Source: Scyliorhinus canicula | Lineage: Eukaryota | Direction of reading: 5' to 3' | Assembly: GCF_902713615.1 (NCBI RefSeq) | Contig: NW_024055500.1 | Location: forward strand, 4,762,135-4,826,134 | DNA: 64,000 nt | Part shown: in pieces, positions 3,001 to 47,095 of the stretch | Layout of the letters: each line of letters opens with the position of its first letter | Position numbering within the stretch: the stretch's first letter is position 1 | The notes under the pieces: generated by a model | Seen by the model: the letters and a program-made list of their open reading frames with translations, nothing else | What the model was told of the DNA's origin: nothing | The model's database searches: none | Made by a program: the position numbers and the translations under genes

Positions 3001-6000
3001 GTGATATATAATATACACAGTGTTATACCCAGTGACACACGGTGTGTTATTATATAATATACACAGCGTTATACCCAGTGACACACGGTGTGTTATTATA
3101 TAATATACACAGCGTTATACCCAGTGACACACGGTGTGTTATTATATAATATACACAGCGTTATACCCAGTGACACACGGTGTGTTATTATATAATATAT
3201 ACAGCGTTATACCCAGTGACACACGGTGTGATATATAATATACACAGCGTTATACCCAGTGACACACGGTGTGATATATAATATACACAGCGTTATACCC
3301 AGTGACACACGGTGTGATATATAATATACACAGCGTTATACCCAGTGACACACGGTGTGTATATATAATATATACAGCGTTATACCCAGTGACACACGGT
3401 GTGATATATAATATACACAGCGTTATACCCAGTGACACACGGTGTGATATATAATATACACAGCGTTATACCCAGTGACACACGGTGTGATATATAATAT
3501 ACACAGCGTTATACCCAGTGACACACGGTGTGATATATAATATACACAGCGTTATACCCAGTGACACACGGTGTGTTATATATAATATATACAGCGTTAT
3601 ACCCAGTGACACACGGTGTGTATATATAATATATACAGCGTTATACCCAGTGACACACGGTGTGTTATTATATAATATACACAGCGTTATACCCAGTGAC
3701 ACACGGGGTGTATTATATAATATACACAGCGCTATACCCAGTGACACACGGTGTGTTATTATATAATATATACAGCGTTATACCCAGTGACACACGGTGT
3801 GTTATTATATAATATATACAGCATTATACCCAGTGACACACGGTGTGATATTATATAATATACACCGCGTTATACCCAGTGACACACGGTGTGATATATA
3901 ATATATACAGCGTTATACCCAGCGACACACGGTGTGATATATAATATACACAGCGTTATACCCAGTGACACACGGTGTGTTATTATATAATATATACAGC
4001 GTTATACCCAGTGACACACGGTGTGATATATAATATATACAGTGTTATACCCAGTGACACACGGTGTGTTATATATAATATATACAGCGTTATACCCAGT
4101 GACACACGGTGTGTTATTATATAATATACACAGCGTTATACCCAGTGACACACGGTGTGATATATAATATATACAGCGTTATACCCAGTGACACACGGTG
4201 TGATATATAATATATACAGCATTATACCCAGTGACACACGGTGTGTTATTATATAATATATACAGCGTTATACCCAGTGACACACGGTGTGATATATAAT
4301 ATACACAGCGTTATACCCAGTGACACACGGTGTGATATATAATATACACAGCGTTATACCTAGTGACACACGGTGTGATATATAATATACACAGCGTTAT
4401 ACCCAGTGACACACGGAGTGATATATAATATATACAGTGTTATACCCAGTGACACACGGTGTGATATATAATATATACAGCGTTATACCCAGTGACACAC
4501 GGTGTGCTATATAATATACACAGCGTTATACCCAGTGACACACGGTGTGATATATAATATACACAGCGTTATACCCAGTGACACACGGTGTGATATATAA
4601 TATACACAGCGTTATACCCAGTGACACACGGTGTGATATATAATATATACAGCGTTATACCCAGTGACACACGGTGTGTTATTATATAATATACACAGCG
4701 TTATACCCAGTGACACACGGTGTGATATATAATATATACAGCGTTATACCCAGTGACACACGGTGTGATATATAATATATACAGCGTTATACCCAGTGAC
4801 ACACGGTGTGATATATAATATACACAGCGTTATACCCAGTGACACACGGTGTGATATATAATATATACAGCGTTATACCCAGTGACACATGGTGTGTTAT
4901 ATAATATACACAGCGTTATACCCAGTGACACACGGTGTGATATATAATATACACAGCGTTATACCCAGTGACACACGGTGTGTTATTATATAATATATAC
5001 AGCGTTATACCCAGTGACACACGGTGTGTTATTATATAATATATACAGCGTTATACCCAGTGACACACGGTGTGATATATAATATACACAGCGTTATACC
5101 CAGTGACACACGGTGTGATATATAATATATACAGCGTTATACCCAGTGACACACGGTGTGTTATTATATAATATACACAGCGTTATACCCAGTGACACAC
5201 GGTGTGTTATTATATAATATATACAGCGTTATACCCAGTGACACACGGTGTGTTATTATATAATATACACAGCGTTATACCCAGTGACACACGGTGTGAT
5301 ATATAATATATACAGCGTTATACCCAGTGACACACGGTGTGATATATAATATACACAGCGTTATACCCAGTGACACACGGTGTGATATATAATATACACA
5401 GCGTTATACCCAGTGACACACGGTGTGTATTATATAATATATACAGTGTTATACCCAGTGACACACGGTGTGTTATTATATAATATACACAGCGTTATAC
5501 CCAGTGACACACGGTGTGATATATAATATACACAGCGTTATACCCAGTGACACACGGTGTGATATATAATATATACAGCGTTATACCCAGTGACACACGG
5601 TGTGATATATAATATATACAGCGTTATACCCAGTGACACACGGTGTGTTATTATATAATATATACAGCGATATACCCAGTGACACACGGTGTGTTATTAT
5701 ATAATATATACAGCGTTATACCCAGTGACACACGGTGTGATATATAATATATACAGTGTTATACCCAGTGACACACGGTGTGATATATAATATACACAGC
5801 GTTATACCCAGTGACACACGGTGTGCTATATAATATACACAGCGTTATACCCAGTGACACACGGTGTGATATATAATATACACAGCGTTATACCCAGTGA
5901 CACACGGTGTGATATATAATATATACAGTGTTATACCCAGTGACACACGGTGTGATATATAATATACACAGCGTTATACCCAGTGACACACGGTGTGATA

Positions 6001-9000
6001 TATAATATATACAGTGTTATACCCAGTGACACACGGTGTGATATATAATATACACAGCGTTATACCCAGTGACACACGGTGTGTTATTATATAATATACA
6101 CAGCGTTATACCCAGTGACACACGGTGTGTTATTATATAATATATACAGCGATATACCCAGTGACACACGGTGTGTTATTATATAATATACACAGCGTTA
6201 TACCCAGTGACACACGGTGTGATATATAATATACACAGTGTTATACCCAGTGACACACGGTGTGTTATTATATAATATATACAGCGTTATACCCAGTGAC
6301 ACACGGTGTGTTATATATAATATACACAGCGTTATACCCAGTGACACACGGTGTGATATATAATATACACAGTGTTATACCCAGTGACACACGGTGTGAT
6401 ATATAATATACACAGCGTTATACCCAGTGACACACGGTGTGATATATAATATACACAGCGTTATACCCAGTGACACACGGTGTGATATATAATATACACA
6501 GCGTTATACCCAGTGACACACGGTGTGTTATTATATAATATATACAGCATTATACCCAGTGGCACACAGTGTGATATATAATATACACAGAGTTATACCC
6601 AGTGACACACGGTGTGATATATAATATATACAGTGTTATACCCAGTGACACACGGTGTGATATATAATATACACAGCGTTATACCCAGTGACACACGGTG
6701 TGTTATTATATAATATATACAGTGTTATACCCAGTGACACACGGTGTGTGATATATAATATATACAGCGTTATACCCAGTGACACACGGTGTGTTATTAT
6801 ATAATATACACAGCGTTATACCCAGTGACACACGGTGTGTTATTATATAATATACACAGCGCTATACCCAGTGACACACGGTGTGTTATTATATAATATA
6901 TACAGCGTTATACCCAGTGACACACGGTGTGTTATTATATAATATATACAGCATTATACCCAGTGACACACGGTGTGATATTATATAATATACACCGCGT
7001 TATACCCAGTGACACACGGTGTGATATATAATATATACAGCGTTATACCCAGCGACACACGGTGTGATATATAATATACACAGCGTTATACCCAGTGACA
7101 CACGGTGTGTTATTATATAATATATACAGCGTTATACCCAGTGACACACGGTGTGATATATAATATATACAGTGTTATACCCAGTGACACACGGTGTGTT
7201 ATTATATAATATATACAGCGTTATACCCAGTGACACACGGTGTGTTATTATATAATATACACAGCGTTATACCCAGTGACACACGGTGTGATATATAATA
7301 TATACAGCGTTATACCCAGTGACACACGGTGTGATATATAATATATACAGCATTATACCCAGTGACACACGGTGTGTTATTATATAATATATACAGCGTT
7401 ATACCCAGTGACACACTGTGTGATATATAATATACACAGCGTTATACCCAGTGACACACGGTGTGATATATAATATACACAGCGTTATACCCAGTGACAC
7501 ACGGTGTGATATATAATATACACAGCGTTATACCCAGTGACACACGGTGTGATATATAATATACACAGCGTTATACCCAGTGACACACGGTGTGATATAT
7601 AATATACACAGCGTTATACCCAGTGACACACGGTGTGATATATAATATACACAGCGTTATACCCAGTGACACACGGTGTGTATTATATAATATACAGCGT
7701 TATACCCAGTGACACACGGTGTGTTATTATATAATATACACAGCGTTATACCCAGTGACACACGGTGTGATATATAATATATACAGCGTTATACCCAGTG
7801 ACACACGGTGTGATATATAATATATACAGCGTTATACCCAGTGACACACGGTGTGATATATAATATACACAGCGTTATACCCAGTGACACACGGTGTGAT
7901 ATATAATATACACAGCGTTATACCCAGTGACACACGGTGTGTTATTATATAATATATACAGCGTTATACCCAGTGACACACGGTGTGTTATTATATAATA
8001 TATACAGCGTTATACCCAGTGACACACGGTGTGATATATAATATACACAGCGTTATACCCAGTGACACACGGTGTGATATATAATATATACAGCGTTATA
8101 CCCAGTGACACACGGTGTGATATATAATATATACAGCGTTATACCCAGTGACACACGGTGTGTTATATAATATACACAGCGTTATACCCAGTGACACACG
8201 GTGTGATATATAATATATACAGCGTTATACCCAGTGACACACGGTGTGTTATTATATAATATACACAGCGTTATACCCAGTGACACACGGTGTGATATAT
8301 AATATATACAGCGTTATACCCAGTGACACACGGTGTGATATATAATATACACAGCGTTATACCCAGTGACACACGGTGTGATATATAATATACACAGCGT
8401 TATACCCAGTGACACACGGTGTGTTATTATATAATATATACAGTGTTATACCCAGTGACACACGGTGTGTTATTATAATATACACAGCGTTATACCCAGT
8501 GACACACGGTGTGATATATAATATACACAGCGTTATACCCAGTGACACACGGTGTGATATATAATATATACAGCGTTATACCCAGTGACACACGGTGTGA
8601 TATATAATATATACAGCGTTATACCCAGTGACACACGGTGTGTTATTATATAATATATACAGCGATATACCCAGTGACACACGGTGTGTTATTATATAAT
8701 ATATACAGCGTTATACCCAGTGACACACGGTGTGATATATAATATATACAGTGTTATACCCAGTGACACACGGTGTGATATATAATATACACAGCGTTAT
8801 ACCCAGTGACACACGGTGTGCTATATAATATACACAGCGTTATACCCAGTGACACACGGTGTGATATATAATATACACAGCGTTATACCCAGTGACACAC
8901 GGTGTGATATATAATATATACAGTGTTATACCCAGTGACACACGGTGTGATATATAATATATACAGCGTTATACCCAGTGACACACGGTGTGATATATAA

Positions 9001-12000
9001 TATATACAGTGTTATACCCAGTGACACACGGTGTGATATATAATATACACAGCGTTATACCCAGTGACACACGGTGTATATTATATAATATACACAGCGT
9101 TATACCCAGTGACACACGGTGTGTTATTATATAATATATACAGCGATATACCCAGTGACACACGGTGTGTTATTATATAATATACACAGCGTTATACCCA
9201 GTGACACACGGTGTGATATATAATATACACAGTGTTATACCCAGTGACACACGGTGTGTTATTATATAATATATACAGCGTTATACCCAGTGACACACGG
9301 TGTGTTATTATATAATATACACAGCGTTATACCCAGTGACACACGGTGTGATATATAATATACACAGTGTTATACCCAGTGACACACGGTGTGTTATTAT
9401 ATAATATATACAGCGTTATACCCAGTGACACACGGTGTGATATATAATATACACAGCGTTATACCCAGTGACACACGGTGTGATATATAATATACACAGC
9501 GTTATACCCAGTGACACACGGTGTGTTATTATATAATATACACAGCGTTATACCCAGTGACACACGGTGTGTATTATATAATATACACAGCGTTATACCC
9601 AGTGACACACGGTGTGTATATATAATATATACAGCAGTTATACCCAGTGACACACGGTGTGTTATTATATAATATACACAGCGTTATACCCAGTGACACA
9701 CGGTGTGATATATAATATAACAGCGTTATACCCAGTGACACACGGTGTGATATATAATATACACAGCGTTATACCCAGTGACACACGGTGTGATATATAA
9801 TATACACAGCGTTATACCCAGTGACACACGGTGTGATATATAATATACACAGCGTTATACCCAGTGACACACGGTGTGTTATTATATAATATATACAGCA
9901 TTATACCCAGTGGCACACAGTGTGATATATAATATATACAGCGTTATACCCAGTGACACACGGTGTGCTATATAATATACACAGCGTTATACCCAGTGAC
10001 ACACGGTGTGATATTATATAATATACACAGCGTTATACCCAGTGACACACGGTGTGATATATAATATACACAGCGTTATACCCAGTGACACACGGTGTGA
10101 TATATAATATACACAGCGTTATACCCAGTGACACACGGTGTGATATATAATATACACAGCGTTATACCCAGTGACACACGGTGTGTTATTATATAATATA
10201 TACAGTGTTATACCCAGTGACACACGGTGTGTTATTATATAATATATACAGCGTTATACCCAGAGACACACGGTGTGTTATTATATAATATATACAGTGT
10301 TATACCCAGTGACACACGGTGTGTTATTATATAATATATACAGTGTTATACCCAGTGACACACGGTGTGTTATTATATAATATATACAGCGTTATACCCA
10401 GTGACACACAGTGTGTTATTATATAATATACACAGCGTTATACCCAGTGACACACGGTGTGATATATAATATACACAGCGTTATACCCAGTGACACACGG
10501 TGTGATATATAATATATACAGCGTTATACCCAGTGACACACGGTGTGATATATAATATATACAGCGTTATACCCAGTGACACACGGTGTGTTATTATATA
10601 ATATACACAGTGTTATACCCAGTGACACACGGTGTGTTATTATATAATATATACAGCGTTATACCCAGAGACACACGGTGTGTTATTATATAATATACAC
10701 AGCGTTATACCCAGTGACACACGGTGTGTTATTATATAATATATACAGCGTTATACCCAGTGACACACGGTGTGATATATAATATATACAGCGTTATACC
10801 CAGTGACACACGGTGTGTTATTATATAATATACACAGCGTTATACCCAGTGACACACGGTGTGATATATAATATATACAGCGTTATACCCAGTGACACAC
10901 GGTGTGTTATTATATAATATATACAGCGTTATACCCAGTGACACACAGTGTGATATATAATATATACAGCGTTATACCCAGTGACACACGGTGTGTTATT
11001 ATATAATATACACAGCGTTATACCCAGTGACACACGGTGTGTTATTATATAATATACACAGCGTTATACCCAGTGACACACGGTGTGTTATTATATAATA
11101 TACACAGCGTTATACCCAGTGACACACGGTGTGATATATAATATACACAGCGTTATACCCAGTGACACACGGTGTGATATATAATATACACAGCGTTATA
11201 CCCAGTGACACACGGTGTGATATATAATATACACAGCGTTATACCCAGTGACACACGGTGTGATATATAATATATACAGCGTTATACCCAGTGACACACG
11301 GTGTGATATATAATATACACAGCGTTATACCCAGTGACACACGGTGTGTTATTATATAATATATACAGCGTTATACCCAGTAACACACGGTGTGATATAT
11401 AATATATACAGCGTTATGCCCAGTGACACACGGTGTGTTATTATATAATATATACAGCGTTATACCCAGTGACACACGGTGTGATATATAATATATACAG
11501 CGATATACCCAGTGACACACGGTGTGTTATATATAATATACACAGCGTTATACCCAGTGACACACGGTGTGATTATATAATATACACAGCGTTATACCCA
11601 GTGACACACGGTGTGCTATTATATAATATACACAGCGTTATACCCAGTGACACACGGTGTGATATATAATATATACAGCGTTATACCCAGTGACACACGG
11701 TGTGTATATATAATATACACAGCGTTATACCCAGTGACACACGGTGTGTTATTATATAATATACACAGCGTTATACCCAGTGACACACGGTGTGTTATTA
11801 TATAATATACACAGCGTTATACCCAGTGACACACGGTGTGATATATAATATACACAGCGTTATACCCAGTGACACACGGTGTGTTATATATAATATACAC
11901 AGCGTTATACCCAGTGACACACGGTGTGTTATTATATAATATATACAGCGTTATACCCAGTGACACACGGTGTGTTTAATATAATATATACAGCGTTATA

Positions 12001-12211
12001 CCCAGTGACACACGGTGTGTTTAATATAATATATACAGCGTTATACCCAGTGACACACGGTGTGTATATATAATATATACAGCGTTATACCCAGTGACAC
12101 ACGGTGTGTTATATATAATATATACAGCGTTATACCCAGTGACACACGGTGTGATATATAATATATACAGCGTTATACCCAGTGACACACGGTGTGATAT
12201 ATAATATATAC
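1..12211. repeat. Tandem satellite, 43/46-bp unit (TGTGATATATAATATAYACAGCGTTATACCCAGTGACACACGG; TGTGTTAT- variant adds 3 nt)
   Basis: Continuous tandem array read directly; two interspersed length variants; runs off the left edge and into the first N gap. Confidence 0.99.
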
Positions 12212-12711
12212 NNNNNNNNNNNNNNNNNNNNNNNNNNNNNNNNNNNNNNNNNNNNNNNNNNNNNNNNNNNNNNNNNNNNNNNNNNNNNNNNNNNNNNNNN
12301 NNNNNNNNNNNNNNNNNNNNNNNNNNNNNNNNNNNNNNNNNNNNNNNNNNNNNNNNNNNNNNNNNNNNNNNNNNNNNNNNNNNNNNNNNNNNNNNNNNNN
12401 NNNNNNNNNNNNNNNNNNNNNNNNNNNNNNNNNNNNNNNNNNNNNNNNNNNNNNNNNNNNNNNNNNNNNNNNNNNNNNNNNNNNNNNNNNNNNNNNNNNN
12501 NNNNNNNNNNNNNNNNNNNNNNNNNNNNNNNNNNNNNNNNNNNNNNNNNNNNNNNNNNNNNNNNNNNNNNNNNNNNNNNNNNNNNNNNNNNNNNNNNNNN
12601 NNNNNNNNNNNNNNNNNNNNNNNNNNNNNNNNNNNNNNNNNNNNNNNNNNNNNNNNNNNNNNNNNNNNNNNNNNNNNNNNNNNNNNNNNNNNNNNNNNNN
12701 NNNNNNNNNNN
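12212..12711. other. Assembly gap (500 N, probably nominal size)
   Basis: Run of exactly 500 N. Confidence 0.99.
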
Positions 12712-12973
12712 CCTCCACCCTCTCCCCATAACCCAGTAACCCCACCCAATACTAAGGGCAATTTTGGACTCTAAGGGCAATTTATCACGGCCAATCCACC
12801 TAACCTGCACATCTTTGGACTGTGGGAGGAAACCGGAGCACCCGGATGAAACCCACGCACACACACGGGGAGGATGTGCAGACTCCGCACAGACAGTGAC
12901 CCAAGCCGGAATCGAACCTGGGTCCCTGGAGCTGTGATGCAATTGAGCTATCCACAATGCTACCGTGCTGCCC
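12712..12973 (-). mobile_element. tRNA-derived SINE (HE1-like shark SINE), 3' part cut by the gap
   Basis: Minus strand starts GGGCAGCACGGTAGC, has B-box-like GGTTCGATTCC and the same core as the SINEs at 28316, 38683 and 40148. Confidence 0.85.
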
Positions 12974-13335
12974 GTAAAAGATTGAAAGTGATTTTCAAAA
13001 GTGGCCGATATGAAGTGCGAAAAGCCTTGCTCGCACGGCGAGAGAACGAGGTCTGGCACGCACTGTCTGCAGGTGGGGTGGAGGCAGCCCTGAGGTTAAC
13101 ACCACAACCCTCAAATCACCTCCGCCAATTCCAAAGCTCCCAGTCCGATCATCGCAAGATTCCCAACACCCCCCCCCCCTCCCCAGTGCTGCTAAAACTG
13201 GACAAGAAAGATCCCAGAGTCAAACCTGGCTTGATAGACCCTCAACCTTTATATTACGCACGACAGAGGGAAGTTACTGAGCAGATTCACAGGAGTCTGC
13301 TGATGGGTTTTTTCCCCCACGAAGAGAATGAAACG

Positions 13336-13341
13336 TTTATT
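13336..13341 (-). terminator. Candidate polyadenylation signal (AATAAA) of the VJ-C1 gene
   Basis: TTTATT on + at 13336-13341, about 160 nt downstream of the candidate stop at 13500. Confidence 0.55.
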
Positions 13342-13499
13342 AAAACAAGAAAAGTGGGACTTGTGGGGGCGGCTATGGAGGAGTAAGTCGCACATTTGGT
13401 GGCTCTCGCTCCGGTCGGACTTTTGGAGCTTTTTCCCCGACTTTTTTGTACTTTTGAGCGCTGGATGGGAAGTGATAGGCACTCAGGCATTGACTCCAG

Positions 13500-13567
13500 C
13501 TACTGGTGTGCGCAATTGAGAAGCAGAAAGAATGGCAAACAGTTGAAGATGTGGGCAACCAAGGGCA
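13500..13567 (-). CDS. Candidate terminal exon of the VJ-C1 gene: short hydrophobic tail (V)PLVAHIFNCLPFFLLLNCAHQ*
   Basis: Phase-1-compatible CAG acceptor at 13570-13568 (68-nt intron); same-frame acceptors at 13583/13580 add (A)AAAA but need 53-56-nt introns; TAG at 13502-13500; AATAAA follows. Confidence 0.4.
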
Positions 13568-13635
13568 CTGCAGCAGCTGCTGCTGAGGACATAAACAACG
13601 CCACCGCTTCCTCCCACTCCACCAGAGGTACTCAC

Positions 13636-13953
13636 CGCGTGTCCTGACCTCCTTCATGATTGGCTGGCTCAGAGTCGGGTGGGAAACGACACATTGGTAC
13701 AGGTCCGCGTTCGCCCAGTCCTGGGTGCTGATGGCCAGTTGGCTGAAGGTGCTGTAACGATCATTGGGATCCCTGGACAGAGGAGCCTGGCTGATCCCCG
13801 ATGACTCCTTCCTTCCGTCCCTGTACCAGGCGATCTGGACGTTGGGCGGGTAGAACCCGCTGAGCAGGCACAGCAGCCGCGTGGCACCGCCCTCCGTGAT
13901 CTCCACCGGGGGCGGGTAATGGAGACTGACTGAGGGAGGGGAGGAAGGTGGCA
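13636..13953 (-). CDS. Ig C1-set constant-domain exon of a non-rearranging VJ-C1 gene
   Basis: TCCACAG acceptor, GTGAGT donor, 318 nt, phase 1/1; CLLSGFYPPNVQIAW ... YSTFSQLAISTQDW...YQCVVSH are hallmark antigen-receptor C1 motifs. Confidence 0.93.
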
Positions 13954-14014
13954 CTGTGGACAAAACAGAGACGGTCAAAGCATTGTCCCGAGAGCGACCC
14001 TCACCCTGAATCAA

Positions 14015-14288
14015 CAGGTCGCTGACCTCTGTGACCCTGCACGGAGAGGTCACTCGCTGACCTCTGTGACCCTGCACCGAGAGGTCACTCGCTGACCTCT
14101 GTGACCTGCACCGAGAGGTCACTCGCTGACCTCTGTGACCCTGCACCGAGAGGTCACTCGCTGACCTCAATGACCCTCAGTTGAGGTCACTCGCTGACCT
14201 CAATGACCCTCAGTTGAGAGGTCACGCCCTGACCTCACTGGCCCTCTGAGAGGCTAATCGTTGACCTCTGACCCTGTTGAGAGGTCAA
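14015..14288. repeat. 35-bp minisatellite, left part (GAGAGGTCACTCGCTGACCTCTGTGACCCTGCACC)
   Basis: Tandem copies; the same family resumes at 15352 on the other side of a CR1 fragment. Confidence 0.85.
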
Positions 14289-14297
14289 TCACCGACC

Positions 14298-15348
14298 ACA
14301 AGACATAGGAGCAGAATTAGGCCACTCGGCCCTTCGAGTCTGCTCCGCCATTCAATCATGGCTGATATTTTTCTCGTCCCCATTCTCCTGCCTTCTCCCC
14401 TGATCCCCTTATTAATCAAGAACCTATCAATCTCTGTCTTAAAGACACTCAGTGATTTGGCCTCCACAGCCTTCTGCGGCAAAGGGTTCCACAGATTCAC
14501 CCCCCTCTGGCTGAAGAAATTCTTCCTCATCTCTCTTTTAAAGGATCGTCCCTTTAGTCTGCGATGGTGAATCCTCTGCTTCAAGTTTTTCCTACAAGTG
14601 GAAACATCCTCTCCACGTCCTCTCCATCCAGGCCTCGCAGTATCCTGTAAGTTTCAATAAGATCCCCCCTCATCCTTCTAAACCCCAACGTGTACAGACC
14701 CAGAGTCCTCAACCGTTCCTCATACGACAAGCTCTTCATTCCAGGGATCATTCTTGTGAACCTCCTCTGGACCCTTTCCAAGGCCCCAGCACATCCTTCC
14801 TTAGATACGGGGCCCAGAACTGCTCACAATACTCCAAATGGGGTCTGACCAGAGCCTTATACAGCCTCAGAAGTATATCCCTGGTCTTGTATTCTAGCCC
14901 TCTCGACATGAATGCTAACATTGCATTTGCCTTCCTAACTGCCGACTGAACCTGCACGTTAACCTTAAGAGAATCGTGAACAAGGACTCCCAAGTCCCTT
15001 TGTGCTTCTGATTTCCGAAGCATTTCCCCATTTGGAAAATAGTCTGTGCCTCTATTTCTCCTTCCAAAGTGCATAACCTCACACTTTCCACATTGTATTC
15101 CATCTGCCACTTCATTGCCCGCTCTCCTTGCTTGTCCAAATCCTTCTGCAGCCCACCTTGCTTCCTCAATACTACCTGCCCCTCTACAGATCTTCGTATC
15201 ATCTGCAAACTTAGCAACAGTAAAGTTCCTTCTTCCAGATCATTAATGTATATTGTGAAAAGTTGTGGGCCCAGCACAGACCCCTGAGGCACACCACTAG
15301 TCACCAGCTACCATCCTGAAAAAGACCCATTTATCCCCACTCTCTGCG
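14298..15348 (-). mobile_element. CR1-clade LINE 3' fragment, frameshifted RT C-terminus plus 3' UTR
   Basis: Minus-strand VPQGSVLGPQLFTIYINDL, LVRPHLEYC.QFWAPY and ERVQRRFTRMIPG motifs; tail CTCCTGCTCCTATGTCTTG. Confidence 0.93.
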
Positions 15349-15351
15349 TTC

Positions 15352-15550
15352 ACTGAGAGGTCACGCCCTGACCTCAGTGACCCTCGGTTGAGAGGTCACG
15401 CCCTGACCCCAGTGACCCTTAGTTGACAGGTCGCGCCCTGACCCCAAGTGACCCTTAGTTGACAGGTCGCGCCCTGACCCCAGTGACCCTTAGTTGCGTG
15501 GTCGCGCCCTGACCCCAGTGTCCCTCAGTTGAGAGGTCACGCCCCGACCT
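15352..15550. repeat. 35-bp minisatellite, right part (GAGAGGTCACGCCCTGACCTCAGTGACCCTCGGTT)
   Basis: Tandem copies related to 14015-14288. Confidence 0.85.
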
Positions 15551-15580
15551 CAGTGCCTCTCTTGCCCAGCTCTGCCTTAC

Positions 15581-15961
15581 CCGCCATGACGTTCAACGTT
15601 GTCCCACAGCCGCAGAAGTCTGTCCGGTTGTGCTCCACCAGATGGTCTGTCAATTGGCAGAAATAACGCGTGGAATCTTGCTTTGTCGTTTTGGAGATTT
15701 TCAGGATAATGCGCCTCCGGGCAAAGTCCTTAACCGCCACATAATGGTGCGTGTCCTGAGTGATGTATGTGGGTTGCTGCTCCCCGGGGTTCCAGTGGAG
15801 TAGTTGCTTGATCACGCTACTGCGCGGAGGAACATAACCCCAGATCAAATACCGGTCATCGGTCTTGCGGGAGAATCGGCATTCCATCGTAACCGGCTCG
15901 CCCTCCATGATGTCCATTACCGTGGACGAGAATCGAAAGTTCCCCCCAGCTGCTGTCAAAC
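15581..15961 (-). CDS. Germline-joined V-J (V-set) exon of a non-rearranging VJ-C1 gene
   Basis: (TC)n-TATTTCCAG acceptor, GTAAGG donor, 381 nt, phase 1/1; EGEPVTMEC, LIW, LKISKTTKQDSTRYFC and J-like CGCGTTLNV all in one uninterrupted exon. Confidence 0.93.
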
Positions 15962-16054
15962 CTGGAAATAGAGAGAGAGAGAGAGATAGAGAGAGAGAGG
16001 CACAAATGATGAATTCTCCACATGAACCCATCTCAGGTAAGGATGGAAAGAAAT

Positions 16055-16160
16055 GCGCATTCAGGACTCTGACCTTCCCGTTGCCATTTTAACACAAGAC
16101 CCTGCTCCCAGGTCCACATGTCTGTCCTTGTGTTCCAGTGAGGTTAAACGCAAACTGGAG
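16055..16160 (+). mobile_element. Penelope-like element, GIY-YIG endonuclease remnant (left part)
   Basis: Encodes (with frameshift) DSDLPVA-HFN...CSSEVKRKLE; continues at 16986 after the CR1 insertion. Confidence 0.7.
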
Positions 16161-16984
16161 TTCAATCCAGGCAAATGCGAGGTGATGCATTTTGGAAGAT
16201 CAAATTCAAGAGCGGGCTATACAGTCAATGGAAGGATCTGGGGAAAATTGATGTACAGAGAGATCTGGGAGTTCAGGTCCATTGTACCCTGAAGGTGGCA
16301 ACGCAGGTCGATAGAGTGGTCCAAGAAGGCATACAGCATGCTTGCCTTCATCGGACGGGGTATTGAGTACAAGAGTCGGCAGGTCATGTTACAGTTGTAT
16401 AGGACTTTGGTTAGGCCGCATTTGGAATACTGCGTGCAGTTCTGGTCGCCACATTACCAGAAGGATGTGGATGCTTTAGAGAGGGTGCAGAGGAGGTTCA
16501 CCAGGATGTTGCCTGGTATGGAGGGTGCTAGCTATGAAGAAAGGTTGAGTAGATTAGGATTATTTTCGTTGGAAAGACGGAGGTTGAGGGGGGGACCTGA
16601 TTGAGATCTACAAAGTTATGAGGGGTATGGACAGGGTAGATAGCAACAAGCTTTTCCCAAGAGTGGGGGTGTCAGTTACAAGGGGGTCACAATTTCAAGG
16701 TGAGAGGGGAAATGTTTAAGGGAGATGTGCGTGGGAAAGTTTTTTACGCAGAGGGTGGTGGGTGCCTGGAACGCTTTACCAGCGGAGGTGGTAGAGGCGG
16801 GCACAATAGCATCATTTAAGATGCATCTAGACAGATATATGAACGGGCAGGGAACAGAGAGAAGTAGACCTTGGAAAATAGGCGACAGGTTTAGATAAAG
16901 GATCTGGATCGGCGCAGGCTGGGAGGGCCGAAGGGCCTGTTCCTGTGCTGTAATTTTCTTTGTTCTTTGTTCTTCTTTGTTCTA
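16156..16984 (+). mobile_element. CR1-clade LINE 5'-truncated 3' fragment inserted into the Penelope remnant
   Basis: EFNPGKCEVMHFG, LVRPHLEYCVQFWSPHY and RRLRG motifs; 3' UTR ends in (TTCTTTG)n. Confidence 0.93.
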
Positions 16985-16985
16985 T

Positions 16986-18790
16986 CATCTCATCTTCCGG
17001 TTAGGCACACTACAGCCTTCCAGCCTGAACATCGAATTCAACAACTTCAGATGGTCAGTTTGTTCTCTCTGGTACTGCCATTAACACACTTTCCCCTTGG
17101 TATCTGTGGCCATTAACACTCTTTCCCCTTGGTATCTGTGGCCATTAACACTATTTCCTCTTGGTGTCTGTGGCCATTAACACACTTTCCCCTTGGTATC
17201 TGTGGCCATTAACACTCTTTCCCCTTGGTATCTGTGGCCATTAACACTCTTTCCCCTGGGTATCTGTGGCCATTAACACTCTTTCCCCTTGGTATCTGTG
17301 GCCATTAACACACTTTCCCCTTGTTTTCTGTGGCCATTAACACTCTTTCCCCTGGGTATCTGTGGCCATTAACACTCTTTCCCCTTGGTATCTGTGGCCA
17401 TTAACACACTTTCCCCTTGGGTTCTGCAGCCATTAACACCCTTTCCCCTTGGTATCTGTGGCCATTAACACTCTTTCCCCTTGGTATCTGTGGCCATTAA
17501 CACTCTTTCCCCTTGGTATCTGTGGCCATTAACACTCTTTCCCCTTGGGTTCTGCGGCCATTAACACTCTTTCCCCTTGGGTTCTGTGGCCATTAGCACT
17601 CTTTCCCCTTGGTATCTGTGGCCATTAACACTCTTTCCCCTTGGTATCTGTGGCCATTAACACTCTTTCCCCTGGGTATCTGTGGCCATTAACACTCTTT
17701 CCCCTGGGTATCTGTGGCCATTAACACTCTTTCCCCTGGGTATCTGTGGCCATTAACACTCTTTCCCCTTGGGTTCTGCGGCCATTAACACTCTTTCCCC
17801 TTGGTATCTGTGGCCATTAACACTCTTTCCCCTGGGTATCTGTGGCCATTAACACACTTTCCCCTGGGTATCTGTGACCATTAACACTCTTTCCCCTTGG
17901 TATCTGTGGCCATTAACACTCTTTCCCCTGGGTATCTGTGGCCATTAACACTCTTTCCCCTGGGTATCTGTGGCCATTAACACTCTTTCCCCTTGGTTTC
18001 TGTGGCCATTAACACTCTTTCCCCTTGGTATCTGTGGCCATTAACACTCTTTCCCCTTGGTATCTGTGGCCATTAACACTCTTTCCCCTTGGTATCTGTG
18101 GCCATTAACACTCTTTCCCCTTGGTATCTGTGGCCATTAACACTCTTTCCCCTTGGTATCTGTGGCCATTAACACACTTTCCCCTTGGTATCTGTGGCCA
18201 TTAACACTCTTTCCCCTGGGTATCTGTGGCCATTAACACACTTTCCCCTGGGTATCTGTGACCATTAACACTCTTTCCCCTTGGTATCTGTGGCCATTAA
18301 CACTCTTTCCCCTGGGTATCTGTGGCCATTAACACTCTTTCCCCTTGGTATCTGTGGCCATTAACACTCTTTCCCCTTGGTATCTGTGGCCATTAACACT
18401 CTTTCCCCTTGGTATCTGTGGCCATTAACACTCTTTCCCCTTGGTATCTGTGGCCATTAACACTCTTTCCCCTTGGTATCTGTGGCCATTAACATTCTTT
18501 CCCCTTGGGTTCTGTGGCCATTAACACTCTTTCCCCTTGGGTTCTGTGGCCATTAACACTCTTTCCCCATGGTATCTGTGGCCATTAACACTCTTTCCCC
18601 TTGGTTTCTGTGGCCATTAACACTCTTTCCCCTTGGTATCTGTGGCCATTAACACACTTTCCCCTTAGTATCTGTGGCCATTAGCACCCGGTTTCCCTGG
18701 GTTTCTGTGGCTGTGATTCATCAAAGAGTCATCGGACTCGAAACGTCGGCTCTTTCCTCTCCCCACAGATGCTGCCAGAGATTTTCCACC
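16986..18790 (+). mobile_element. Penelope-like element, right part (endonuclease C-terminus, 3' region containing the 32-bp minisatellite, terminal tail)
   Basis: HLIFRLGTLQPSSLNIEFNNFR at 16986-17051; tail GGACTCGAAACGTCGGCTCTTTCCTCTCCCCACAGATGCTGCCAGA at about 18734-18780. Confidence 0.65.
17077..18712. repeat. 32-bp minisatellite (GGCCATTAACACTCTTTCCCCTTGGTATCTGT), about 50 copies
   Basis: Period of 32 read directly (TATCTG at 17101 and 17133). Confidence 0.97.
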
Positions 18791-18829
18791 GTTTTCTCTT
18801 TCCTTGGCAGTTAACTGTCAGTCGCCATC

Positions 18830-20925
18830 AACTGGTGCATTCACCATGGCAACCAATCAGAGTCCGCATGCCCAAAATTATTAAAACGGTATTGACAGTG
18901 GGAGGAGGAGGTCCTTGTGGAGCAGAACTCCGGCGCCGACCTCTTTTGTAACAGGCAGAGGCCATTCTGTCCTTCAAACCTCTTCTAGCACTCGACGCAA
19001 TCATGGCTGACCCACTAAGCTCCATATTCCTATCTTTTGCAGTATTTGTTCTTTTAGATGTCAGTTACCTACTTAAAAAAGCTAATATGGTGGGGGAGTA
19101 AGGGGGGGAGGTGGGAAACAGGGAATTCTAGACCAGTCTGCCTGATATCTGTCAGGAAATTCCTGGAATTAAGGACTCCGGGGAGGTTCCAGTTGATCAG
19201 AGGGAGCTAGCACAGATATGTAAAGAGTGGGTTGTCCCTGATGACCCTGATTAAAGGTTTTGACTGTAGCCAAGGAAGAGGCGCAGAGGATGCCTATGGC
19301 TGTTACTTACATGGATTTCCAGAAGACATTGCACAAAGTTCCCCACGACAGACTTTTCGTCATCCACAAAAATCCACCACCGACGCACAGCGGCAGCTGT
19401 GTGCCCCGCGGGAACTCGCTGAGGCTCCTTCGACAGCACCTTCCAAACCCACGGCCCGTTACCGTCTAGAAGGACGGGGGGGGGGCAGACATGCGGGGAA
19501 CCCCCCCCCCCCCCCCACCTGGAGGTTCCCCTCCGAGTCACTCACCATCCCGACTGAGGAATATATCGGCCCTTCCTTCACTGTGGCTGGGGTAGAATCC
19601 CGGGACTCCCTCCCTAACAGCGCGGTGGGCGTACCTACCCCACACGGGGCCGCAGCAGGCCCAAGATGGCGGCTCACCCACCAGCTTCTCCAGGGGGCAA
19701 TTAGGGATGGGGAATAAACTCTGGGTCTGACCCAGCCACGCCCAGATTCCGCAAACAAATAAATGTGAAAAACTCCTGGAAATACTGAACTACCCGCCCA
19801 GGACATTACTGTGGACACGTGAGCAATCAAAAAAAAATAGTAGTTCCTCTTATTTCTTAAATCAGTTGACATCTCCTGACCATCTGTGGCCCAGTGACCA
19901 TCGACTTGAGATAGTCATTTCCTGCTCTCTCCTCTCACAGTATCGTTTCGGTAAAGGGAGTTCCTCAAGGTCAGACATCTTCAGCCGCTACATCGTCCGG
20001 GATGGGCCCACTGTGGCCACCCTCGCTGGCGGACGGAGGGAGTATTGAAGGTGGGCGGCTGGAGTTACCGGTCGTGTGGTTCTTCTCCGACCAGGATGGT
20101 GTCTTCCCATCAGAAGTGGGGATGTTTGCGGATGACTGCACAATGTTCAGCACCATTCGCCACTCCTCAGATACTGAAGCCGTCTCCAAATGCAGCAAGA
20201 CCTGGACAATATCCAGGCTTGGGGCTGACAAGGGGCAAGTTACATTCACGCCACACAAGCCCCAGGCAATGACCATCTCCTACAAGAGAGGATCTAACCA
20301 TCGCCCCATTGACCATTCAATGGCGTTACCATCGCTGAATCCCCCACATCCTGGGGGTTACCATTGATCAGAAACTGAACTGGACCCAGCCATATAAATA
20401 CTGTGGCTACCAGGGCAGGTCAGAGGCTGGGAATCCTGCGGAGAGTAACTCACCTCCTGACCCCCTCCCCCTCCCAAAGCCTGTCCACCATCGTACAAGG
20501 ACACAAGTCAGGAGTGCGATGGGAGACTCTCCACTTGCCTGGATGAGCGCGGCTCCCAACCGCACTCGAGAAGCTGGACACCATCCAGGACAAAGCAGCC
20601 CCGCTCAATCGACACGCTGACCACCGACATTCACTCCCTCCACCCCCCCCCCCCGACGCACAGCGGCAGCCGTGTGCACCGTCTACAAGACGCCCCGCGG
20701 GAACTCCTCCTTCGACAGCACCTTCCAAACCCACGGCCCGTTACCGTCTAGAAGGACGAGGGGGGGCGGCAGACACACGGGGAACCCCCCCACCACCTGG
20801 AGATTCCCCTCCGAGTCACTCCCCATCCCGACTGGGGAATATATCGGCCGTTCCTTCACTGCGGCTGGGGTAGAATCCCGGCAACTCCCTCCCTAACAGC
20901 ACGGTGGGTGTACCTACGCCACACG
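18830..20925. mobile_element. Cluster of old, degenerate CR1/L2-type LINE fragments in both orientations
   Basis: Degenerate SxxPQG and GMFADDCTMFSTIR motifs; two similar LINE 3'-end copies at about 19376-19740 and 20640-20925. Confidence 0.65.
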
Positions 20926-21101
20926 GGACCCTTGTTTGCCTCCTCCTCTCGGACAAAGCCTTATTCCAAAGTTGGGGAATGACTCTCAGTCACACCATTT
21001 CGCAAGGGGGGGGGGGGGGGGGGTGACCTCAGCCGTGATGGGCTAGCAGCGGTCAGGGGAACGGCCTGATCCCGCGCGGTAGCCTGGGTAAAGGAGCTTA
21101 C

Positions 21102-21147
21102 CAGCCAGGACGAGGAGGCAGAAAGCGAGTTCGACCATCAGGTTCAT
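21102..21147 (-). CDS. Leader (signal peptide) exon of the VJ-C1 gene, MNLMVELAFCLLVLA(G)
   Basis: ATG at 21147-21145, hydrophobic 15 codons + 1 nt, GTAAG donor at 21101; phase 1 matches the V exon (G|GT = Gly). Confidence 0.85.
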
Positions 21148-21175
21148 ATTGGCTGGAGGAGGGATCAGAGGTCAC

Positions 21176-21440
21176 TGTGTTGCTCTGTTCCTCTGTCGCT
21201 GTGACCCTGTATCGCTCTGTCGCTGCGTTGCTCTGTCCCTCTGTCGCTGTGTCGCTGTGTTGCTGTGTCGCTCTGTCTCGCTCTCTGACGCTCTGTTCCT
21301 CTGTCGCTGTGTCCCTGTGTTGCTGTGTCGCTCTGTCTCGCTCTCTGACGCTCTGTCCCTCTATCGCTGTGTCCGTGTATCGCTCTGTCGCTCTGTCTCG
21401 CTCTCTGACGCTCTGTCCCTCTATCGCTGTGTCCCTGTGC
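21176..21440. repeat. Degenerate (CTCTGTCGCTGTGT)-type low-complexity repeat just upstream of the leader exon
   Basis: Repeated CTCTGTC/GCTGTGT motifs. Confidence 0.75.
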
Positions 21441-21544
21441 AGAGCTGGAGAATAAGTGCCTGCTCCTCCCTCAAATTATCTTTCACATTGAATCAGCTTC
21501 ACTCGCTGGCCGCTGACTACACACCCAGCTTCCTGTGTGAGGAG

Positions 21545-23380
21545 TCAGTGACTGAGTGTGTGAGTGAGTGTGTTTGAGTGTGTGAGTGTTTGTGAGTGTG
21601 TGGGAGTGAGTGTGTTAGTGTGTGTGTGTGGGAGTGAGTGTGTTAGTGTGAGTGAGTGTGAGTGTGTGAGTGCGGGAGTAAGTGTGGAAGTGAGTGTGGG
21701 AGTGTGGGAGTGAGTGTGTGAGTGTGAGTCAGTGTGTGAATGTGAGTATGTGAGTTTAAATGTGAGTGTGTGAGTGTGGGCTAGAGTGTGTGTGTGTGTG
21801 GGAGTGAGTGAGTGGGAGAGTATGAGTGAGTGTGGGAGTGAGTGTGTGAGTGAGTGTGTGTGGGAGTGAATGTGTGAGTCTGAGTGTGAGTATGCAAGTG
21901 TGCAAGTGTGTGTGAATGTGTGTGAGTGTGTGTGAGCGTGTGTCAGTGTGTGAGTGTGTGTGAGCGTGAGTGTGTGTGAGTGTGCGAGTGAGTGTGGGAG
22001 AGTGGGAGTGAGTGTGTCAATTTGGGTGTGAGTGTGGGAGAGTGAGTGAGTGTGTGTGAGTGTGTCAGTGTGGGAATGAGTGTGTGTGTGTGAGTGTGTC
22101 AGTGTGGGAGTGAGTGTGTGAGTGTGTGAGTGTGAGAGTCTGAGAGAATGTGTGAGTGTGAGTGTGTGAGTGTGACTGTGAGTGAGTGTGGGAGTGAGTG
22201 GGTGAGTGTGATTGTGTGAGCGTGGGCATGTGTGAGTGTGGGAGTAGTGTGTGAGTGTGTGAGCGTGAGCATGAGTGAGTGTGGGAGTGAGTGAGTGTGA
22301 GAGTTTGTGAGTGTGTGTGTGTGTGAGTGTGAGAGTGAGTGTGTGAGTGTGCGAGTGCATGTGGGTGTGAGTGTGAGTGTGGGAGTGAGTCTCTGAGTGT
22401 GTGAGTGTGGGGGTGGCTGTGTAAGTGTGTGTGTCTGGGAGTGTGTGTGGGTGTGAGTCTGTGAGTGCGGGAGTGTGAATTTGGGAGTGAGCCTCTGAGT
22501 GTGTGAGTGTGCGAGTGTGAGTGTGGGAGCAAGCCTGTGAGTGTAAGTGTGTGTGAGTGTGTGAGTGTGAGTGTGGGACTGAGTGTGTGAGTGTGGTGTG
22601 TGAGTGTGCGAGTCTGTGAGTGTGCAAGTGTGAGTGTGTGTGAGTGTGAATGTGGGAGTGCGTGGGTGAATGTGGGAGTGTGCAAGTGTGTGGGAGTGTG
22701 AGTGTGAGAGTGTGTGAATGTGAGTGTGTATGAGTGTGGCAGTGAGTCTCTGAGTGTGTCAGTTTGGGAGTGAGTGTGAGTGTGTGTGTGGGAGTGAGTG
22801 TGTGAATATGGTGTACGAGTGTGTAAGTGTTAAGTGTGGGAGTGAGTGTGGCAGTGAGTCTGTGAGTGTGTGTGTAAGTGTGTGTGAGTGTGCGAGTGTG
22901 AGTGTGGGAATGAGTGTGTGTGTAGTGTGCGAGTGTGCGAGTGTGCGAGTGTGTGAGTGTGCGAGTGTGAGTGTGTGTGAGTGTGAGTATGGGAGTGCGT
23001 GTCTGAATATGTGAGTGTGCGAGTGGGAGTGTGTGTGTGAATGTGAGTGTGGGAGTGTGTGTGAATGTGTGAGTGTGCGAGTGTGTGAGTGTGTGGGAAT
23101 GAGTGTGTGAGTGTGTGAGTGTGCGAGTGTGAGTGTGTGGAAGTGAGTGTGTGAATGTGTGAGTGTGCGAGTGTGTGAAGGTGGGAGTGAGTCTGTGAGT
23201 GTCTGAGTGTGGCAGTGAGTGTGTGAATGTGGGAGTGAGTGTGAGTGTCGGAGTGAGTGTCTGAGTGTGGCAGTGTGTGTGTGAATGTGGGAGTGAGTGC
23301 CTAAGTGTGGGAGTGAGTGTGAGTGTGGGAGTGAGTGTCTGAGTGTGTGAGTGAGTGTGAATGTGCGAGTGAGTGTGATT
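21545..23380. repeat. Degenerate (GAGTGT)n/(GT)n simple repeat
   Basis: Almost exclusively GT/GA/GG dinucleotides; gives His/Thr-rich pseudo-ORFs. Confidence 0.97.
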
Positions 23381-23439
23381 GACACATCGGGGGACAGTCG
23401 TCATTAACCAGGCCTGGTGAGACCAGCGATTGAGCATTC

Positions 23440-26400
23440 AGCCCCTCCTAAACTCTGCTCAGTCCCTCTATCCCTCACTCCAGTGTCCCTCAGTCCCATT
23501 GCCCCTCACTCCAGTGTCCATCAGTCCCACTGTCCCCCACTCCAGTGTTCCTCAGTCCCACAGTCCCTCACTCCAGTGTCCCTCAGTCCCACTGCCCCTC
23601 ACTTCAGTGTCCCTCATTCCCATTGCCCCTCACTCCAGTGTCCCTCAGTCCCACTCCCCTCACTCCAGAGTCCCAGTCCCACTCCAGTGTTCCTCAGTCC
23701 CACTGCCCCTCACTCCAGTATCCCTCAGTCCCACTCCCCTCACTCCAGTGTTCCTCAGTCCCACAGTCCCTCACTCCAGTGTCCCTCAGTCCCACTGTCC
23801 CTCACTCCAGTGTCCCCTCAGTCCCACTGTCCCTCACTCCAGTGTACGTCAGTCCCACTGTCCCTCACTCCAGTATCCCTCAGTCCCACTGTCCCTCACT
23901 CCAGTGTCCCTCAGTCCCACTGTCCCTCACTCCAGTGTCCCCTCAGTCCCACTGTCCCTCACTCCAGTGTCCCCTCAGTCCCACTACCCCTCACTCCAGT
24001 GTACCTCAGTCCCACTGTTCCTCCAGAGTCCCTCAGTCCCACTGTCCCTCACTCCAGTGTCCCTCAGTCCCACTGCCCTCACTCCAGTGTCCCCTCAGTC
24101 CCACTGCCCCTCTCCCCAGTGTCCCTCAGTCCCACTGACCCTAACTCCAGTGTCACCTCAGCCCCACTGTCCCTCACTCCAGTGTCCCTCAGTCCCACTG
24201 TCCCACACCAGTGTTCCCTCAGTCCCACTGCCCCTCACTCCAGTGTCCCTCAGCCCCACTGTCCCTCACTCCAGTGTCCCTCAGTCACACAGTCCATCCA
24301 GTGTCCCTCAGTCCCACTGTCCCAAACTCCAGTGTCCCTCAGCCCCACTGTCCCTCACTCCAGTGTCCCTCAGTCCCAGAGTCCCTCCAGTGTCCCTCAG
24401 TCCCACTGTCCCTCACTCCAGTGTCCCCCTCAGTCCCACTGTCCCTCACTACAGTGTTCCTCAGTCCCACTGCCCCTCACTCCAGTGTCCCTCGGTCCCA
24501 CTGTCCCTCACTCCAGAGTCCCTCAATCCCACTGTCCCTCACTTGTGTCCCCTCAGTCCCACTGTCCCTCACTCCAGTTTCCCTCAATCCCACTGTCCCT
24601 CACTCCAGTGTCCCCTCAGTCCCACTGCCCCTCACTCCAGTGTCCCTCAGTTCCACTGTCCCTCACTCCAGGGTCCCTCAGTAACATTGTCCCTCCCTCC
24701 AGTGTCCCCTCAATCCCACTGTCCCTCACTCCAGTGTCCCTCAGTCCCACTGTCCCTCACTCCAGTGTCCCCTCAATCCCACTGTCCCTCACTCCAGTGG
24801 TCCCTCAGCCACACTGTCCCTCACTCCAGTATCCCCTCAGTCCCACTGTCCTTCACTCCAGTGTCCCTCAGTAACATTGTCCCTCACTCCAGTGTCCCCT
24901 CAATCCCACTGTCCCTCATTCCAGTGTCCCTCAGTCCTGCTATCCCTCACTCTAGGGTCCCTCAGTCCCACTGTCCCTCACTCGTGTCCCCTCAATCCCA
25001 CTGTCCCTCACTCCAGTGGTCCCTCAGTCACACTGTCCCTCACTCCAGTATCCCCTCAGTCCCACTGTCCTTCACTCCAGTGTCCCTCAGTCACACTGTC
25101 CCTCACTCCAGTGTCCCTCAGTCCCACTGCCCCTCACTCCAGTGTCCCTCAGTCCCACTGTCCCTCACTCCAGTGTCCCCTCAGTCCCACTGTCCCTCAC
25201 TCCAGTGTCCCTCAGTCCCACTGTCCCTCACCAGTGTCCCCTCAGTCCCACTACCCCTCACTCCAGTGTCCCTCAGTCCCACTGTCCCTCACTCCAATGG
25301 TCCCTCAGTGCCACTGTCCCGCACTCCAGTGTCCCTCAGCCCCACTGTCCCTAAATCCAGTGTCCCTCAGTCCCACAGTCCCACTGCCCTCACTCCAGTG
25401 TCCCTCAGTCCCACTGTCCCTCACTCCAGTGTCCCTCAGTCCCACTGTCCCTCCAGTGTCCCTCAGTCCCACTGTCCGTCACTCCAGTGTCCTTCAGTCC
25501 CACTGTCCCTCACTCCAGTGTCCCTCAGTCCCATTGCCCGTCACTCCAGTGTCCCTCAGTCCCACTGCCCCTCACTCCAGTGGTCCCTCAGTCCCATTGC
25601 CCGTCACTCCAGTGTCCCTCAGTCCCACTGCCCCTCACTCCAGTGTCCCTCAGTCCCACTCCATTGTCCCTCAGTCCCTCTGTCCCTCACTCCAGTGGTC
25701 CCTCAGTCCCACTGCCCCTCACTCCAGTGGTCCCTCAGTCCCACTGTCCCTCACTCCAGTGTCCCTCAGTCCCACTATCCCTCACTCCAGTGTTTCCTCA
25801 GTCCCACTTTCCCTCACTCCACTGTCCCTCAGTCCCACTCCAGTGTCCCTCAGTCCTATGGTCCCTCTCTCCAGTGTCCCTCAGTCCCATTGTCCCTCAC
25901 TCCAGTGTCCCTCAGTCCCACTCCATTGTCCCTCAGTCCCTCTGTCCCTCACTCCAGTGGTCCCTCAGTCACACTGTCCCTCACTCCAGTATCCCCTCAG
26001 TCCCACTGTCCTTCACTCCAGTGTCCCTCAGTCACACTGTCCCTCACTCCAGTGTCCCTCAGTCCCACTGCCCCTCACTCCAGTGTCCCTCAGTCCCACT
26101 GTCCCTCACTCCAGTGTCCCCTCAGTCCCACTGTCCCTCACTCGTGTCCCTCAGTCCCACTGTCCCTCACTCCAGTGTCCCCTCAGTCCCACTGTCCCTC
26201 ACTCCAATGGTCCCTCAGTGCCACTGTCCCTCACTCCAGTGTCCCTCAGCCCCACTGTCCCTAAATCCAGTGTCCCTCAGTCCCACAGTCCCTCCAGTGT
26301 CCCTCAGTCCCACTGCCCCTCAATCCCATGTCCTTCAATCCCACTGCCCTCACACCAGTGTCCCTCAGTCCCACTGTCCCTCACTCCAGTGTCCCTCAGT

Positions 26401-27585
26401 CCCACTGTCCCTCCAGTGTCCCTCAGTCCCACTGTCCGTCACTCCAGTGTCCTTCAGTCCCACTGTCCCTCATTCCAGTGGTCCCTCAGTCCCACTGCCC
26501 CTCACTCCAGTGTCCCTCAGTCCCACTCCATTGTCCCTCAGTCCCTCTGTCCCTTACTCCAGTGGTCCCTCAGTCCCACTGTCCCTCACTCCAGTGGTCC
26601 CTCAGTCCCACTGTCTCTCACTCCAGTGTCCCTCAGTCCCACTATCCCTCACTCCAGTGTTTCCTCAGTTCCACTGTCCCTCACTCCACTGTCCCTCAGT
26701 CCCACTCCAGTGTCCCTCAGTCCCATGGTCCCTCTCTCCAGTGTCCCTCAGTCCCATTGTCCCTCACTCCAGTGTCCCTCAGTCCCACTCCATTGTCCCT
26801 CAGTCCCTCTGTCCCTCACTCCAGTGGTCCCTCAGTCACACTGTCCCTCACTCCAGTGGTCCCTCAGTCCCACTGTCCTCCACTCCAGTTGTTCCTCACT
26901 CCAGTCGCCCCCCACTCCAGTTGCCTCTCACTCCAGTTACCCTCACTCCAGTTGCCCCTCACTCCAGTCGCCCCTCAGTCCCACTGTCCCCCACTCCAGT
27001 TGCCCCTCACTCCAGTCGCCCCTCACTCCAGTTTCCTCTCACTCCAGTTACCCTCACTCCAGTTGGCCCTCACTCCAATCGCCCCTCACACCAGTTTCCT
27101 CTCACTCCAGTCACCCTCACTCCAGTTGCCCCTCACTCCAGTTGCCCCTCACTCCAGTGTTCCCTCAGTCCCACAGTCCCTCACTCCAGTGGTCCCTCAG
27201 TCCCACTGCCCCTCACTCCAGTGGTCCCTCAGTCCCACTGTCCCTCACTCCAGTGGTCCCTCAGTCCCACTGTCCCTCACGCCAGTGGTCCCTCAATCCC
27301 ACTGTCCCTCACTCCAGTGGTCCCTCAGTCCCACTGTCCCCCACTCCAGTCGCCCCTCACTCCAGTCGCCCCTCACTCCAGTTCCCCTCACTCCAGTTGC
27401 CCCTCACTCCAGTCGCCCCTCACTCCAGTTGCCCCTCACTCCAGTCACCCCTCACTCCAGTTTCCTCTCACTCCAGTTGCCCCTCACTCCAGTTGCCCCT
27501 CACTCCAGTTGCCCCTGACTCTAGTTGCCCCTCACTCCAGTTGTGCCTCACTCCAGTTGCTCCTCATTCCAATTGTCCCTCACTC
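23440..27585. repeat. C-rich minisatellite built from CAGTCCCACTGTCCCTCACTCCAGTGTCCCT modules, grading into a CCCTCACTCCAGTYGC-type variant at the right end
   Basis: Direct reading; stop-free repeat explains the 700-950-aa Pro/Ser ORFs in several frames. Confidence 0.96.
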
Positions 27586-44035: not shown

Positions 44036-44688
<653 letters not shown>

Positions 44689-47052: not shown

Positions 47053-47095
47053 ACTGTGCCGTGTATCTGACGTCTTTTTGGTTCTGCACTTACAG

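Follow-up and report, generated by a model that had tools for sequence, protein, structure and literature searches.

In elasmobranchs, UrIg2 has been described as a germline-joined antigen-receptor-like gene that never rearranges, a paralogue of UrIg, which is linked to the major histocompatibility complex (MHC) (Flajnik, Stanfield et al., Sci Adv 2025, PMC12227049). Its product is a disulfide-linked homodimer made up of a VJ domain, nine C domains in the nurse shark or eleven in the epaulette shark, and a transmembrane (TM)/cytoplasmic region; in the nurse-shark protein, C1 pairs in the manner of CH1/CL and C2-C3 in the manner of Fc (PMC12227049). Gill and liver, rather than lymphocytes, are reported as the main sites of expression, and the role proposed is innate recognition or homophilic adhesion. 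In addition, the RAG transposon has been proposed to have targeted a relative of the UrIg2 VJ exon (PMC12227049). The subject here is a stretch of 64,000 nucleotides of the small spotted catshark, Scyliorhinus canicula (contig NW_024055500.1 of assembly GCF_902713615.1, positions 4,762,135 to 4,826,134; "the window" in what follows). Its minus strand carries three exons that are almost certainly the 5' part of the catshark UrIg2 gene, namely a split leader, a VJ domain in one exon and the first constant exon, C1.

In the lambda light-chain clusters of sharks, V and J are likewise joined in the germline. The fold of UrIg2 C1 is also nearest to that of C-kappa/lambda (PMC12227049). However, a light chain stops after one C domain, whose final Cys makes the bond to the H chain, whereas UrIg2 splices onward and forms its dimer via the G strands; the FGxG motif of J and the WYQQ type of framework region 2 (FR2), both proper to light chains, are absent from the catshark gene. 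The MHC-linked UrIg (Flajnik et al., J Immunol 2023, as cited in PMC12227049) resembles UrIg2 in its non-rearranging VJ followed by C1-type domains, in being a homodimer and in the cysteines of the J strand. Unlike UrIg2, it maps to MHC class III, its C domains are fixed in number, and the V identity between the two paralogues is 28-32% (PMC12227049). Another example of a V domain with an unrearranged J-like strand, sometimes followed by C1-set domains, is provided by SIRP, tapasin and NCR3/NKp30. These proteins are far more distant in sequence and none of them is among the significant matches of the catshark V; in the published tree, NCR3 is the outgroup to a set that comprises UrIg/UrIg2 as well as immunoglobulin (Ig) and T cell receptor (TCR) (PMC12227049).

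The boundaries of the three catshark exons (Table 1) had been proposed in a preliminary description of the window, and their coordinates, lengths, phase and splice sites have proved exact. All three are in phase 1 and bounded by GT/AG sites (the acceptors have a polypyrimidine tract and an AG, the tract before the VJ exon being CT-rich), and they join in frame into 248 residues with no stop. The VJ exon is recognised by Pfam as V-set (E=3.5e-7) and the C1 exon as C1-set (E=2.5e-20), as that description had it; its proposal of a complete V with a fused J-like strand and no recombination signal sequence (RSS) also holds, no RSS-type heptamer/nonamer having been found in 15400-16100. Residue for residue, the spliced product equals the N-terminal 248 of XP_038644097.1, a 257-aa protein of Scyliorhinus canicula named 'T cell receptor beta chain MC.7.G5-like' in RefSeq. 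In fact, this accession appears in the Methods of the 2025 paper as UrIg2, under 'Syca: small spotted catshark', and was included in the trees built there with Ig, TCR, UrIg and NCR3 sequences (PMC12227049). Catshark UrIg2 is thus already known, published down to its accession, and is neither a new gene nor a new class. Of the alternatives first put forward, a shark non-rearranging gene of the UrIg type was the right one, and the possible new class falls.

The domains themselves point in the same direction. When V and C1 were searched separately, a check that the preliminary description had proposed, both matched the nurse-shark protein 9dmx_A ('UrIg2 V-C1-C2-C3') collinearly and at E values of about 1e-51: V over residues 2-127 (E=7.1e-51) and C1 over residues 129-232 (E=6.9e-52). 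The second-best match of V was a TCR alpha V (E=1.1e-5), and a HMMER search of the whole library with V returned only 11 representatives at E<=1e-10, one of which stands for the cluster containing XP_038644097.1. Among UrIg2 proteins, the V identity is 85% to S. torazame (a fragment), 62% to Heptranchias (980 aa) and 48% to a stingray; for published UrIg2 accessions it is 59% to the whale shark and 57% to the sawfish. For the window C1, the nearest counterpart is the first C domain of UrIg2 (54% in Heptranchias, 50% in the whale shark), and later shark C domains and batoid C domains are less similar. The weaker match to batoids agrees with the loss of C1 reported for them (PMC12227049). On the other hand, identity to a second, UrIg-like group of shark sequences (P0008, P0009, P0010, P0013, P0016 and P0024) is 34-38% in V and 37-40% in C1, so that the high conservation of UrIg V between species (about 80%, PMC12227049) is not seen with the window V. 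In a maximum-likelihood tree of V, S. torazame and the window form a pair (95/97), and the UrIg2 and UrIg-like groups stand apart in 200/200 bootstrap trees when tested as groups; the deeper branches are weak, and the outgroups are sequences returned by the V search, without bona fide shark IgL and TCR V.

The likeness to UrIg2 extends to architecture and motifs. As in the described gene, there is a split leader, a single VJ exon and a C1 that follows V directly, together with a C-x-C G strand, a WGY in FR2, an N-glycan site in the loop equivalent to complementarity-determining region 3 (CDR3) and an unrearranged RNA (PMC12227049). The alignment of orthologues shows the FR2 motif RYLIWGYVP to be conserved across UrIg2, as are an N-x-T site in the CDR3-equivalent loop, immediately followed by D(F/W)C (NRT in the catshark VJ), and a G strand C-x-C-G-x-x-L in place of F-G-x-G (C-G-C-G in the catshark). 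Judged from this alignment, the WGY of FR2, the CGCG and a C1 donor with no terminal Cys are family traits common to the orthologues, and these are the very features by which the gene had earlier been set apart from an ordinary germline-joined light chain, rightly as it turns out. What differs from the described UrIg2 is that the window holds only leader, VJ and C1, and that identity to the whale shark, an orectolobiform, is about 59% in V and about 50% in C1.

The two cysteines of the G strand deserve a separate comment. In every UrIg2 orthologue a C-x-C stands opposite Cys132 and Cys134 (FCGCG). The corresponding pair of the nurse shark (crystal structure 9DMX) links the chains by two disulfides in an unusual V-V dimer, whose interface is made by the A and G strands (PMC12227049). 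By analogy, Cys132 and Cys134 may form interchain disulfides in the catshark protein too, which, by homology with the 9DMX protein, would be a disulfide-linked homodimer. Its C1 would pair like CH1/CL and the later C2-C3 units like Fc, while a TM segment would anchor the protein in the membrane. Dimerisation, membrane anchoring and tissue pattern are in this way carried over to the catshark from its orthologues.

Transcription of the gene can be followed in contigs from public RNA runs of Scyliorhinus canicula (X1, X2, X3, X18 and X38), and spliced RNA is present in runs from two studies. Both junctions that the preliminary description had singled out for an RNA check have been seen. The leader junction, 21102>15961, is bridged by contigs from three runs (X1, 546 nt; X18, 668 nt; X38, 627 nt); it was read from the ends of contigs aligned on the leader region alone, those of X18 and X38 extending 483 nt further past the leader donor, and the unmatched end displayed for the X38 contig reads, in reverse complement, as the beginning of the VJ exon. 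The junction 15581>13953 is bridged by one contig, that of X1, which is placed on 21100-21194, on 15958-15581 and then directly on 13953-13881, and so crosses both introns. At the 5' side, the X18 contig spans 21100-21260 plus 24 letters beyond and the X38 contig extends to 21224; transcription starts further upstream than 21260. Contigs of all five runs align collinearly to the germline VJ exon; they show 0-1 differences from it and do not vary at the junctions (contigs drop rare variants), and therefore the RNA gives no sign of V rearrangement.

Table 1. Features of the window, with the differences between RNA and genome found in the exons
Feature	Position	Strand	Remarks
5' untranslated region, at least 113 nt	21148-21260	minus	covered by X18 contig
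Leader exon, first part of split leader (MNLMVELAFCLLVLA + 1 nt)	21147-21102	minus	46 nt, starts at ATG 21147, donor GTAAGC
Intron 1 (leader intron), 5.1 kb	15962-21101	minus	32-bp x 51 tandem array at 17077-18711
Single VJ exon: leader end, V domain and fused J-like G strand (FCGCGTTLNVMA)	15961-15581	minus	381 nt, donor GTAAGG
Intron 2, 1.6 kb	13954-15580	minus	35-bp tandem repeats and interspersed repeat abundant in RNA runs
C1-set exon (UrIg2 C1)	13953-13636	minus	318 nt, acceptor ...TCCACAG, donor GTGAGT
RNA/genome difference S105P	15695		V
RNA/genome difference N180S	13842		C1
RNA/genome difference V181A	13839		C1
RNA/genome difference Q182H	13835		C1
RNA/genome difference N206D	13765		C1
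RNA/genome difference A223V	13713		C1
43-bp satellite, 276 copies, 94% matches	7-12208	not assigned	occupies expected site of C2 and later exons
8-31-bp arrays	21534-27585
69 bp x 101 array	29159-36162
33 bp x 71 array	44702-47056
52 bp x 45 array	47388-49701, again 61882-64000
70 bp x 28 array	53501-55420
37 bp x 58 array	55667-57759
Weak reverse-transcriptase open reading frame fragment	43481-44071	minus	Pfam scan
Weak reverse-transcriptase open reading frame fragment	59245-60072	plus	Pfam scan

The same contigs bear on where the gene ends. Its end had been set at 13336, at an AATAAA, and the whole had been taken for a leader-VJ-C1 gene. In the RNA, the donor after C1 is used: a contig of X2 (402 nt) runs 62 nt beyond it and one of X1 (148 nt) 19 nt beyond, and the sequence past the donor has no match in 12712-13635. 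Since the contigs leave C1 at 13636 for sequence outside that interval, the gene extends beyond 13336-21147. Read-through from the C1 donor to the AATAAA was considered and rejected, the RNA depth being 0 over 13503-13615. The proposed end thus does not stand, and leader, VJ and C1 hold as the 5' part of a gene, not as the whole of it. Between 13277 and 13502 RNA coverage is far above that of the exons, with no connection to C1; this stretch is perhaps a repeat, unrelated to the UrIg2 gene.

In other sharks the gene continues with more C domains and a TM segment, so the exons of the window cover only its beginning. Orthologues bear several further C domains plus the TM segment, and those with good assemblies are all long. 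In the catshark, the RefSeq model spans 28.8 kb, which puts its last exon roughly 7.6 kb past the left end of the window, and the nine final residues (ALHLVLRQV) are absent from all six frames of the window. Some 0.9 kb beyond C1 the sequence gives way to 500 N (12212-12711) and then to the satellite, which continues to the window edge; gap and satellite either mark an assembly break or belong to an intron 3 of great length. A similar situation is found in the great white shark, where a 226-aa V-C1 model with a short tail has been annotated as 'immunoglobulin lambda-1 light chain-like' (record of GCA_017639515.1), and a 1105-aa 'titin-like' model with C domains and TM, beginning in C2, lies 1 kb downstream on the same strand. 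A further C1-like domain occurs in the latter model; judged by eye, its identity to the first is about 88%. Automatic annotation has here divided one gene after C1, and on this ground the short catshark model is read likewise: the comparison suggests a truncation by annotation or assembly.

The chromosomal surroundings can be compared with those of other species. The locus is on a 5.2-Mb record, and its RefSeq neighbours are an SPT16-like gene upstream and an RBM39/RBM23-like gene 5.2 kb after the model. In the human genome, SUPT16H and RBM23 flank TRA/TRD near PSMB5 on 14q11.2. UrIg2 has been placed in an antigen-receptor complex with IgH, TCR alpha-delta and PSMB5, in synteny with human chromosome 14 (PMC12227049), and the catshark neighbours are consistent with a 14q11.2 placement of UrIg2. 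Apart from UrIg2, neither the window nor the sequence within 10 kb contains an Ig or TCR gene.

Several observations weigh against taking the three exons as the 5' part of UrIg2. The TCR alpha/delta and IgH arrays are on other pieces of the catshark genome, and the window gives no linkage to them. A tblastn search of the window with V and C1 as queries found no further Ig exon, and exons for C2, C3 or TM are lacking there; the RefSeq model stops nine residues after C1; and no long Scyliorhinus UrIg2 protein was found among 8000 scored candidates. Moreover, the G run at 15947-15942 is one letter short in a low-depth contig of X1 (depth 4.6; 5 G against 6 in the genome), a change that would put the exon out of frame. 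The missing exons could be explained if catshark UrIg2 were naturally shortened to V-C1 plus a nine-residue tail, a small secreted dimer whose distal C exons and TM have been lost behind the satellite. The 257 aa of XP_038644097.1, its end after C1, the 28.8 kb of the model with the next gene soon after it, and the failure to find a longer one would all fit. This explanation is nevertheless improbable, given that the great white shark has its short V-C1 model followed 1 kb on by C domains and TM, that every well-assembled orthologue is long (see also PMC12227049), and that gap and satellite fall exactly at the expected site of C2, which suggests an assembly break. A short UrIg2 paralogue was also sought in the catshark and none was found. 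Among the exonic differences between RNA and genome, at least six, all those listed, change an amino acid, and three of the six changed residues are adjacent (N180S, V181A and Q182H). Genome and variant forms occur together in X1, and the variant form only in X2 and X3; the X2 variant contig loses its match at 13888 and has 87 unmatched letters upstream. That catshark UrIg2 exists in more than one protein form, through allelic diversification of a non-rearranging receptor (not discussed in the 2025 paper, PMC12227049) or as a naturally shortened, secreted V-C1 form, seems rather unlikely. The variant contigs are more ordinarily explained by a duplicate of the C1 exon (C1') lying farther downstream, like the one of the great white shark.

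Apart from the length of the gene, its functional state and its identity can be questioned. The G missing from the run in X1, together with the truncated model, might be taken to indicate a transcribed pseudogene. However, the genome and the X38 contig (depth 12.3) both have 6 G, and the 6-G frame agrees with the LTxxGxNFRFSS of the orthologues, so the 5-G form is either a contig error at that depth or a null allele; all three exons are open, every canonical Ig residue is retained, and correctly spliced RNA occurs in several runs, which leaves the pseudogene very improbable. Even less likely is that the gene is the MHC-linked UrIg rather than UrIg2. The overall design is alike and the CxC of the J strand is found in both, but identity to UrIg2 is 48-85% in V and 50-54% in C1, well above that to the UrIg-like group; the accession is placed under UrIg2 (PMC12227049), and the neighbouring genes are of the 14q11.2 type, not of the MHC. 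As for an ordinary germline-joined Ig light-chain gene, RefSeq does call relatives 'kappa/lambda light chain-like', and UrIg2 C1 is structurally nearest to C-kappa (PMC12227049). This possibility is practically negligible: neither a terminal Cys nor a stop follows C1, where RNA uses a donor instead, the orthologues have many C domains and TM, FR2 reads WGY and the J strand CGCG instead of FGxG, and the best V match outside the family stands at 1e-5 against 1e-51 for UrIg2.

The remainder of the window consists largely of repeats. Upstream of the gene, 21534-64000 is mostly tandem arrays (Table 1), and the Pfam scan of the other open reading frames of the window gave only two weak reverse-transcriptase fragments and no other gene. 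Within intron 2, an interspersed repeat at 14294-15400, with 35-bp tandem repeats on either side (14019-14236 and 15354-15555), has a very high RNA depth on both strands. Beside the gap, the stretch 12712-12975 occurs at extreme abundance in every RNA run, with contig word depths reaching 8e5, and the contig ends there contain GAATCGAACCCG, the reverse complement of a motif resembling a tRNA T-arm. Because its ends carry this motif, the stretch is probably a tRNA-derived short interspersed element on the minus strand. An Rfam search of 12700-22000 returned nothing.

The catshark locus bears on the reference annotation. In the reference genome the gene is misnamed 'T cell receptor beta chain-like', and its model stops after C1 beside an assembly gap and a 12-kb satellite; the distal half of catshark UrIg2 is still to be recovered. 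The gene belongs to a family of wider significance, since UrIg2 is the published candidate for the type of intact VJ exon that was split by the RAG transposon about 500 million years ago, giving the rearranging antibodies and TCRs.

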